Origin: Macrostomum lignano
Taxonomy: Eukaryota
NCBI GenBank assembly: GCA_002269645.1
Contig: NIVC01000798.1
Location: 159,867 to 223,866 of the forward strand
Length of the DNA stretch: 64,000 bases
Direction: 5' to 3'
This document shows positions 25,601 through 28,600 of the stretch, piece after piece. Every line of letters begins with the position of its first letter. Position 1 is the stretch's first letter. Made by a program: the position numbers and the translations under genes. The notes under the pieces were generated by a model that saw only the letters and a program-made list of their open reading frames with translations, was not told the origin of the DNA and did not search any database.

Positions 25601-28600
25601 TGCACAGTCTGACCAGCCCCGTGGCGCCGTTCGGCCAGGCAATCATGGCTCCGCAGGCCAGCGTGAACTCCATCCTGCTAGTGTCCAACCTGGACGATGA
25701 GGTAAGAGCATACCTTAGCCTTCATCAGTGCTTTGATTACCTTTGTCACTTTGTTGCTATCCAACTGCAAACTATTGGGAAAGAGATATTCGTTCAAAAA
25801 TGAATTCAGTAGCTTTGCAAATCTGATTTTTGTCGGCTCCATTTGATCAATAGAAAATTCTATTGGGTAAGCCGTGAACAAGCAGCTTATTGTTCTGCTT
25901 TGTACCTCACATGCTTCACTGATCTTTTAGGTCCCGCTTACTAACAACACTTACAGGATTTGTCGTAGCATTGAAGTCATCCACAGTTAGGGGGTGCATG
26001 TAATTATGCGTCTTTTGTCTTTTTTGCAGCATCATATTCTTATCACTACTAAAATTATTCTTGATTTCCTACCTGCAAGAAGAAACTTATAATTGCTTCT
26101 ATTTGAATATGAAAACTACCTCCACTGAAATGCATACTATGCTACTATAAGTGGTAACTGGCCTGCCTAAGATATCTATAATTATAAATATACTTTCCCA
26201 CTTCTGGAAATTAAAAAGCAAATGCAATGCGATACAGTACTATCGACCTTACACACACACACACACACACACACACACACACACACACACACTGATTTTC
26301 TTTGCCTGACTTCCTACTGTCGCCCGAAGCCACAAAACATATCCTGCTTGAACTGTTTTTCAATTCTATAGAAGATAACTCCTGACGCTCTCTTCACACT
26401 TTTCGGTACGTCTGTTCACTTTATTTTATGCTTTAAGCTTTGCCTTGCTACTAACAGTACTACTAGCCGCTTTTATGCGATTGCTAAGCGTTGATTTGTT
26501 TAGAGGCAATTGTCTAATAACTCCTTCGTTTCTGAATCTGTCCTCTGTTTATTTTGTGTTTCTGTTGGTCGGAATTTTGTTATAGTTTTGTGCAGTGCTT
26601 TTTTTCCCGTGGTAACAATATGAGCGAACACGATAACAGACTGCTGCAGTGATTCAACTGCAAACCTATAGAATGAGAAAAATTGTGAAAAAATGGAAAG
26701 CCACTTTCATAGAGCTAAACATTCCATGGAACTTTACGTTTACTGCAAGAGTATTATAACAAATGGTAGCTAGGTTTATATTTTAAGTATCAAATTATTA
26801 ACGAGTACGGTTGCATGTGCTCACTACAATTTTTAACCTAATTAACATAACACACCTTCCTGTTATTGCATAGTAATAGCATTGCACTTTATTTTAATGT
26901 ATTCAACTTATAAAAATGTATACAAAGCACTAGATAAAAGCAACACTAGATAGCTGCGAGGATTATTGGAAGCGTCCCCTAAACGGGAACAAATAATGCG
27001 TCGTAAAGGACATCGGTGTACGCAAAAATTATTTTCCTTCAAGTCTTCTCGAGTGTTGGCGCTTGCGCAACGGCAATTTCGCACGTAGATGCAATTAATT
27101 TAGAATTAAAGTACATCACACATCACATCCTCTAATTACATTTGTTGCTGCACACTAACCCCGGTAATTCACCAGTATGTTAACGTTTTTGAGCAATAGA
27201 TGTTTAATATACGAAGCGAAAATGCATGTATTTAAGTAGCGGTGTACAAACCTTATTAGCACATCCTTCGAATGCGAACACATAAACTCGCATGTTGACA
27301 TGTAAATTAAAGTGTGCATTTTTGCCTTTACCAGGCTAATCCCAGCCGATTCTATGCAGAAGCTCCTCAACCCTACACCCTCACCCCAGCCAATTCTATA
27401 CAGAATCTCCTCAACCCCACACCCTCACCCCAGCCAATTCTATACAGAATCTCCTCAACCCCACACCCTCACCCCAGCCAATTCTATACAGAATCTCCTC
27501 AACCCCACACCCTTACCCCAGCCGATTCTGCAAGCTCCTCAACCCCACACCCTCACCCCAGCCGATTCTATGCAGAATCTGCTCAACCTCACACCCTCAC
27601 CCCAGCCGATTCTATGCAGAAGCTTCTCAACCCCACACCCTCACCCCAGCCGATTCTGCAAGCTCCTCAACCCCACACCCTCACCCCAGCCGATTCTATG
27701 CAGAATCTGCTCAACCTCACACCCTCACCCCAGCCGATTCTATCCAGATGCTCCCCAACCCCACACCCTCACCCCAGCCGATTCTATGCAGAAGCTCCTC
27801 AACCCCACACCCTCACCCCAGCCGATTCTATCCAGATGCTCCTCAACCCCACAACCTCAACCCAGCCGATTCTATCCAGATGCTCCTCAACCCCACACCC
27901 TCACCCCAGCCGATTCTATGCAGAAGCTCCTCAACCCCACACCCTCGCCCCAGCCGATTCTATCCAGATGCTCCTCAACCCCACATCCTCACCCCAGCCG
28001 ATTATATGCAGAAGCTCCTCAACCCCACATTCAAACTTGCTAATTTGCCAAAAGAGCTGATAGATATCGAGACGTAAAATTCAAACAACCCTTGTCCCTG
28101 ATCATATTGCATTCGCAGCTTCGCAAATTTCCACAGGTGTATACGGAGATGTACAGCGCGTAAAAATAATGTACAACAAGAAGGACAACGCACTCATCCA
28201 GTTCACGGACGCCAGTCAGGCACAGCAGGCGCTGCAGAATCTCAACGGGGTGAGGCTGTTCGGACGGCCGCTGAAGATCGCCTTCAGTCGGCACGCCCAG
28301 GTCGCGCTGCCAAAGGAGGGCGCCGACGCCGGCCTCACGAAGATATTCACCAACAGTCCGCTGCATCGGTTTAAAAAGCCGCACTCAAAGAACTTTCAGA
28401 ACATCTTTCCACCGTCGCAGATTCTGCACCTGAGCAACATCCCGCTGGAGGTTCCCGAGGAGAAAATCAAAGCAATCTTCGAAGACTTCGGATTTAACGT
28501 GGTTGCCATCAAGTTTTTCCAGTTAGTCACGTGCAAACAATAAGTTTTTCGATACGTATAGAAGCAGAGTTGCTTTCTATGTTTATTGCGCTTCTAATTT

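Follow-up and report, generated by a model that had tools for sequence, protein, structure and literature searches.

Is the 34-nucleotide (nt) exon that decides between productive and unproductive mRNA in vertebrate polypyrimidine tract-binding protein (PTB) genes a vertebrate device, or does it belong to animals at large? The question is raised by a 64,000-nt stretch of flatworm DNA (the window), in which a gene whose predicted protein identifies it as a four-RRM (RNA recognition motif) PTB/hnRNP I orthologue contains an isolated 34-nt coding exon at 26372-26405 (exon 9). Autoregulation through PTB exon 11 is a textbook case of splicing coupled to decay, so far described as a vertebrate circuit. 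We consider it likely, with a probability of roughly 0.6, that exon 9 is a coding microexon orthologous to the vertebrate PTB exons and acts as an ancestral switch between productive and unproductive splicing. An animal-wide unproductive-splicing switch at this position is well supported by the comparisons described here, and PTB autoregulation in the window flatworm itself is, on our analysis, plausible but unproven.

The exon and its surroundings in the window are as follows.
25574..25701, + strand: PTB exon 8, ending in strand beta1 of RRM3 with donor GAG/gtaaga; its 3' end matches the junction in a related transcript contig (L002)
25702..26371, + strand: intron 8, 670 nt, with TCTTTTGTCTTTTTT near 26010, (AC)21 at 26251-26292 and TTTTCTTTGCCTGACTTCC near 26297
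26372..26405, + strand: exon 9, the 34-nt microexon, placed by direct reading, frame and orthologous 34-nt exons
26406..26411, + strand: 5' splice site of exon 9, GTACGT, with C at +4
26406..28136, + strand: intron 9, 1731 nt, which holds a 44-nt minisatellite
28137..28521, + strand: PTB exon 10, the rest of RRM3, the linker and the start of RRM4, with donor CA/gttagt; downstream partner of the skipped junction
28161..28163, + strand: premature TAA of the skipped frame, from joined-exon translation

Read directly, exon 9 is AAGATAACTCCTGACGCTCTCTTCACACTTTTCG, 34 nt long, with ...tcaattctatag before it and gtacgtctg after it. It starts in phase 0 and ends in phase 1 (ag/AAG...TCG/gtacgt), encoding 11 residues plus the first base of a Gly codon. 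Spliced between 25701 and 28137, it gives ...LLVSNLDDE, the exon 9 residues and then VYGDVQRVK..., so that it codes for the RRM3 loop after beta1 and most of helix alpha1. Direct reading and joined translation thus bear out a preliminary description of this locus, which had reported a 34-nt exon with these coordinates and phases 0 to 1. The same description had called the donor non-consensus. GTACGT is indeed unusual, being the sole donor in the gene with a base other than A at +4, but it is not weaker than several others: a simple consensus count gives it 6/9, equal to the donors of exons 4, 6, 10 and 11. The 3' half of the exon is CU-rich (GCTCTCTTCACACTTTTCG), and the elements CTCTCTTC and CTTTTC lie within the exon.

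The vertebrate counterpart can be recognised from its boundaries. Bird PTBP2 exon 10 (genomic locus L003) reads ctaaag/ATGGTTACGCCCCAAAGTCTGTTTACCCTCTTCG/gtatgt, with ...NLNEE/gtcagt upstream and aaag/GTGTTTATGGTGATGTGCAGCGCGTGAAG (VYGDVQRVK) downstream, and its length, phases and codon boundaries are identical to those of exon 9. By position and boundaries, exon 9 is therefore established as the equivalent, or orthologue, of vertebrate PTBP1 exon 11 and PTBP2 exon 10, both of which are 34 nt (Spellman et al., PMC1940037). This equivalence had been proposed in the preliminary description, and the codon-for-codon match to bird PTBP2 confirms it.

An exon of 34 nt with the same boundaries is present in each of the following animals.
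Macrostomum lignano: atatatag/AGGGTCTCTCCCGACGCTCTCTTCACACTCTTTG/gtacgtta
Geodia barretti (sponge), L005 9111-9144: ctcaag/ATGACTACTCCTCATGCTCTGTTCATTCTCTTTG/gtacgtctc
Ceratitis capitata (fly): followed by gtacgtctg
Ostertagia ostertagi (nematode): followed by gtgaat
Fasciola gigantica (liver fluke): followed by gtaggt
Coptotermes formosanus (termite): followed by gtacgtta

The survey of exon size suggested at the outset for this locus thus returned 34 nt and identical boundaries in sponge, flatworms, insects, nematode and bird, and in all genomic copies compared the exon sits between ...NL(N/D)xx and VYGDV. Exon 9 is 82% identical to the orthologous M. lignano exon. With a 34-nt orthologue in 8 other animal genomes examined, its presence is, on sequence comparison, far beyond chance. 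The exon is followed by GTACGT in the window, M. lignano, Geodia, Ceratitis and Coptotermes, which make up 5 of the 9 genomes and include sponge, flatworm and insects. Because this is a rare donor hexamer, we take it to be conserved.

Since the length of exon 9 is 1 mod 3, its skipping shifts the reading frame. Joining 25701 to 28137 yields eight shifted codons (VYTEMYSA) and then the TAA at 28161-28163. This stop precedes the exon 10/11 junction by 358 nt; with a second junction beyond that one, two lie downstream of it. The established rule is that nonsense-mediated decay (NMD) follows when a stop precedes a later exon junction by more than 50-55 nt. By this rule, and if flatworm NMD uses exon junctions, the skipped mRNA would have an NMD-type layout, with a long 3' region in addition.

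Transcripts lacking exactly this exon exist outside vertebrates. The preliminary description had singled out the 25701 to 28137 junction, and its equivalent is present in a related flatworm. Logan contig L002 (SRR30276812; 1131 nt) crosses at least 5 junctions without an intron and matches window exons 5, 6, 8, 10, 11 and 12 at 75-86% identity. It runs from ...CTGGACGAGGAG straight into GCGTGTACGGAGATG, an exon 8-exon 10 join with exactly 34 nt absent, and its frame, ...LLVSNLDEE/ACTEMYRG followed by a stop, is the exact equivalent of the window junction. In the sponge Geodia both forms are on record: the included isoform (P0222, 519 aa) reads ...NLNEK MTTPHALFILFG VYGDV..., and the skipped isoforms (P0221, P0225 and P0128) end in ...NLNEKVCMEMLSV. 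The Geodia contig L004 is a skipped transcript, and the exon itself is present in the sponge genome (L005). A downstream Geodia open reading frame (ORF), P0218, which is called only if the frame is broken, is recorded on 9 contigs and probably marks skipped transcripts. No record came back when Mya arenaria and two Geodia isoforms were looked up in the databases.

We also surveyed the skipped junction by scanning a degenerate pattern over JGI metatranscriptome contigs. There were seven matches, six of which are intronless PTB mRNAs without exactly the 34-nt exon; the seventh (L013) was discarded as genomic DNA carrying an intron 3' end. Judged by their best named-protein match, the six are gastropod-like (L008), arthropod-like (L009, L011), lophotrochozoan-like (L010, L012) and trematode-like (L014). 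Each stops after eight shifted codons (VSMVTCTA, VFTEMCIV, GYMGMYIG, ASTAMWYG, GYTGMYIV and VCMAMLSV). L009 has a 443-codon upstream ORF through RRM1 and RRM2 and is therefore a near-complete mRNA. The skipped junction in a related flatworm, a sponge and six invertebrate contigs indicates that skipping predates vertebrates and probably bilaterians.

L002, Geodia, bird PTBP2 and the six metatranscriptome contigs all end the skipped frame at the shifted codon where the window has its stop. Taken together, the wide occurrence of skipped mRNAs, the conserved odd donor and the conserved place of the stop point to a functional switch that goes back to the ancestor of animals.

Two further features of this region concern the stop and the codons after it. 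The conserved RVK tripeptide (28157-28165 in the window) gives rise to the premature stop through the third position of its Val codon, as GTA or GTG followed by AAR becomes TAA or TGA. Of the 15 sequences compared, which range from sponge to bird, 13 have a purine at this position, and the other two, Fasciola and the genomic match L013, have GTC; selection for an early stop may account for this, or merely codon bias. Five nt past the premature TAA there is an ATG (28169-28171, MYNKKDNAL...) in the RRM3-RRM4 frame, likewise in L002 and M. lignano, and the database ORFs P0001 and P0010 begin at that internal ATG.

In the mechanism that we propose, inclusion of exon 9 would supply the start of RRM3 and give full-length PTB. 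Skipping would join exon 8 to exon 10, shift the frame into the TAA at 28161-28163 and produce an mRNA with the layout of an NMD substrate. The switch would in this way set the amount of translatable PTB mRNA, and it would have been inherited from the common ancestor of animals. For the window species we infer four things: skipping of exon 9, NMD of the skipped mRNA, regulation of the skipping as opposed to accident, and PTB as its driver. PTB as the driver is the weakest of these points, since macrostomid flatworms lack the usual CU-rich architecture in their introns.

This can be seen from counts of overlapping TCTT, CTCT, TTCT and TCTC tetramers. The counts in the 150 nt upstream of the exon were ranked against each species' own locus; the percentage is the share of 150-nt intervals with at least as many tetramers.
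Window: 3 tetramers, 44%, AG-free zone 40 nt
M. lignano: 1 tetramer, 74%, AG-free zone 53 nt
Fasciola: 4 tetramers, 41%, AG-free zone 2 nt
Ostertagia: 1 tetramer, 81%, AG-free zone 8 nt
Geodia: 22 tetramers, 0.2%, AG-free zone 106 nt
Bird PTBP2: 19 tetramers, 1.5%, AG-free zone 437 nt
Coptotermes: 13 tetramers, 2.8%, AG-free zone 180 nt
Ceratitis: 8 tetramers, 7%, AG-free zone 105 nt

A CU-rich, AG-poor upstream intron is common to sponge, insects and vertebrate, and not to flatworms or nematode. In the window, the 150-nt flanks of exon 9 hold 3 tetramers upstream and 2 downstream. The CU content within the exon stands out from synonymous resampling in M. lignano (9 tetramers, p = 0.001) and Geodia (5, p = 0.03). 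If PTB acts in the window gene, its likelier target would be the CU-rich exon end beside the GTACGT donor.

Several observations weigh against the proposed switch. The 250-nt flanks of exon 9 contain 4 CU tetramers upstream and 3 downstream, against 4.1 +/- 2.9 over all intronic 250-nt intervals of the gene, and the AG-free zone of 40 nt falls within the 16-63 nt of its other exons. In the introns flanking the exon, the window and M. lignano can be aligned solely over TATAG upstream and over gtacgt with some 10 further nt (about 16 nt in all) downstream. Within the window exon itself the CU motifs are not significant against synonymous resampling (4 vs 1.2-1.4 expected, p about 0.11-0.14). The collections yielded no transcripts of the window's own species, and the protein collection does not contain its sequence. 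The assembled contigs carry no quantitative inclusion ratios, and a 34-nt exon may be skipped at some rate, microexons being hard to define. In one array study (PMC2265522), alternative splicing of C. elegans ptb-1 was classed as introducing no premature stop and as unresponsive to smg-1, which makes it less than evident that the loop is universal. Finally, NMD and PTB dependence have been demonstrated in vertebrates only.

These results also decide the fate of the argument from PTB-binding flanks made in the preliminary description. The U/C tracts and the CA run that it listed are present at the positions given, but they do not rise above the intron background and the CA run has no equivalent in M. 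lignano; with background tracts, no extended AG-free zone and almost no intron conservation, the argument itself fails. We accordingly rejected PTB-motif enrichment in the window flanks, where CU tetramers are at intron background, as well as a long AG-exclusion zone with a distant branch point, given the 40-nt zone, and (AC)21 (26251-26292) as a conserved element, given the lack of a counterpart in M. lignano. A search for structured RNA or small nucleolar RNA in the flanking introns gave no Rfam family above threshold in 25000-29200, and a protein search with a macrostomid linker profile brought no additional macrostomid transcripts.

The strongest rival to a regulated switch is that the microexon, being hard to define, is skipped through splicing noise; regulation by other factors and the translation of truncated products carry less weight. 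If exon 9 were constitutive, skipped mRNAs would be errors caused by its 34-nt length, a mediocre donor and a purine-interrupted acceptor tract, and they would be cleared with no regulatory role in the window flatworm. The missing CU enrichment and long AG-free zone in the window and M. lignano, and likewise in Fasciola and Ostertagia, suit this explanation, as do the barely conserved introns and the fact that L002 is the one skipped contig known among macrostomids. Yet the skipped form was plentiful enough to be assembled in at least 8 independent lineages, Geodia skipped-type ORFs occur on at least as many contigs as included ones, and all other exons are normally spliced in the skipped contigs. 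In addition, GTACGT has been kept from sponge to insect, which would be unexpected if selection acted solely for efficiency. We regard noise as unlikely.

The switch could instead be real and regulated, but by factors other than PTB, that is, by cross-regulation through another hnRNP, an hnRNP L-type protein on (AC)21, or the levels of the spliceosome or SR proteins. PTB-type intronic motifs are absent around the exon, and 80-120 nt before it there is the (AC)21 run; hnRNP L binds CA repeats. This run, however, is not found in M. lignano and is an ordinary microsatellite in a repeat-rich window, and the 3' half of the exon is CU-rich, strongly so in M. lignano (9 tetramers), so that PTB could still bind within the exon; we judge control by other factors to be quite improbable. 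Last, the skipped mRNA could be translated into useful truncated proteins, either an RRM1-RRM2-linker fragment ending in VYTEMYSA or a product re-initiated at 28169-28171 (MYNKK...), or both. The in-frame ATG just past the stop in the window, L002 and M. lignano agrees with this, and skipping of PTBP3 exon 2, also 34 nt, gives N-terminally truncated isoforms that are not NMD-sensitive (PMC4477659). A re-initiated protein would however lack RRM3 beta1 and alpha1, and the Met is macrostomid-specific (other phyla have I/L-L-Y/F-N-K-K there) whereas skipping is animal-wide; moreover, the homologous vertebrate isoform is an NMD target (PMC1940037). Useful truncated products are, in our view, highly improbable.

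Returning to the ancestral splicing switch, we tentatively propose a bolder version of it, which we see as a serious possibility rather than a probable one. Regulated skipping and mRNA decay would together have formed a PTB dosage-control loop already in the last common ancestor of sponges and bilaterians. The exon length, the suboptimal GTACGT donor and the premature-stop codon would then have been kept for more than 600 million years, and in some lineages, such as the macrostomids, the control elements would have left the introns, with the exon as a possible new location.

The gene model on which these comparisons rest was built with human PTBP1, used as a probe only, as the tblastn query. 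Splice sites were set by eye and by alignment to the related transcript L002, and the reading frame was checked. The resulting 12-exon PTB/hnRNP I model encodes an uninterrupted 487 residues from RRM1 to the stop codon, and all four RRM regions align to PTBP1. It covers RRM1 onward, the true first coding exons being further upstream. The top database matches of the model protein are PTB proteins; the two closest, a Logan ORF and a protein of Macrostomum lignano, are 82% and 74% identical to it, respectively, and the M. lignano genomic locus (L001) has an identical exon order. The window is therefore assigned to a free-living flatworm of macrostomid-like type. The remaining exons of the model are listed here.
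14608..14760, + strand: exon 1 of the model, first half of RRM1, 153 nt, in frame; tblastn to PTBP1, splice sites, frame
19929..20063, + strand: exon 2, second half of RRM1; tblastn, splice sites, frame
21331..21465, + strand: exon 3, linker and start of RRM2; tblastn, splice sites, frame
21766..21817, + strand: exon 4, RRM2; tblastn, splice sites, frame
22287..22345, + strand: exon 5, RRM2; aligned to transcript contig L002
22951..23125, + strand: exon 6, end of RRM2 and linker; L002 alignment, splice sites
24917..24991, + strand: exon 7, linker; splice sites, frame
28604..28667, + strand: exon 11, RRM4
28780..28848, + strand: exon 12, end of RRM4 and stop codon TAA

Other features of the locus deserve mention. 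Intron 9 contains a minisatellite at 27341-28029 (44-nt C-rich unit, 15.8 copies, 90% match) that makes up 40% of the intron and is not present in the M. lignano intron; it explains the strong negative GC skew at 26-28 kb. In intron 8, gtcttttgtcttttttgcag/CATCAT (26010-26030), one of the U/C tracts noted earlier, resembles a good 3' splice site, located 340 nt before exon 9, and may mark a cryptic or alternative exon. PTB exon 1 of the model is bracketed by two very large, mutually reverse-complementary tetranucleotide arrays, (AGAC)x295 at 12055-13237 and (CTGT)x283 at 14865-15999, which could pair in the pre-mRNA as a duplex of about 1.1 kb looping out the exon. Inverted arrays around an exon are a layout known to favour exon skipping or back-splicing into circular RNA. 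In M. lignano L001 (2870-3470) the regions matching window exons 2 and 3 are each present twice within 600 nt, which suggests a local tandem duplication of exons 2-3 in that assembly. Further along the window, long GC-rich open frames at about 53800-61350 (+ strand) end in a HECT-type C-terminus (...LAFHLS) and are probably part of a large gene for a HECT E3 ubiquitin ligase; at about 60355-60900 they include an array of in-frame repeats (VAHLVGLS / SGSSSGAV).

Database gene models handle the microexon poorly. M. lignano model P0283 (UniRef) joins exon 6 to exon 10, omitting exons 7-9 (237 nt in the window model) with the frame kept, and M. lignano model P0010 (NCBI) starts at an internal Met. 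The Batillaria model P0091 has GGVLG in place of the microexon, and the Geodia model P0122 stops at ...NLNEKV. In genome annotation the microexon is often missed by gene predictors, examples being the truncated or mis-joined M. lignano, Batillaria and Geodia models.

The presence and skipping of the exon in sponges, flatworms, molluscs and arthropods suggest that PTB dosage control by this switch is ancestral in animals. On the bolder version set out above, it would be among the oldest position-conserved unproductive-splicing events in animals. A full-text literature search brought up no account of the event outside vertebrates, an earlier remark in Wollerton 2004 or Boutz 2007 being possible. 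Tractable invertebrate systems are at hand in Macrostomum and planarians (RNA interference) and in Drosophila heph (NMD mutants), and the cis elements can be compared between sponge, insects and vertebrates, which kept them, and flatworms and nematodes, in which they were lost or relocated.

Among comparable known systems is PTBP1 exon 11: its skipping is autoregulatory alternative splicing coupled to NMD (Wollerton et al., 2004, as summarised in PMC1940037). Exon 9 shares with it the host gene family, the 34-nt length, the position at the start of RRM3, the phases 0 to 1 and the frame shift when skipped. The two differ in their surroundings, vertebrates having long conserved upstream regions, distant branch points, extended AG-exclusion zones and many PTB motifs (PMC1940037), and the window a 40-nt AG-free zone and background motif density. 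PTBP2 (nPTB) exon 10, which in vertebrates is cross-regulated by PTBP1 and lies within an ultraconserved element, has boundaries identical to those of exon 9. Its skipped frame, VFMVMCSA, ends at the same shifted stop codon as VYTEMYSA in the window. However, the bird donor is GTATGT rather than GTACGT, the bird exon has an AG-free zone of 437 nt and 25 upstream CU tetramers per 250 nt (19 per 150 nt), and the flatworm introns cannot be aligned past a few bases.

PTBP3 (ROD1) exon 2 is also 34 nt, frame-shifting and repressed by PTB paralogues (PMC1940037, PMC4477659), but it is located elsewhere, at the 5' end of the coding sequence, its skipping is insensitive to NMD and it gives alternative translation starts. 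Unproductive splicing of SR-protein genes mostly involves poison-exon inclusion or 3' untranslated region intron events in unrelated genes, and PTB is mentioned in that context as a mammalian example only (Lareau and Brenner, 2015, PMC4379411). Its conservation across kingdoms nevertheless provides a precedent for very ancient alternative splicing coupled to NMD in genes for splicing regulators.

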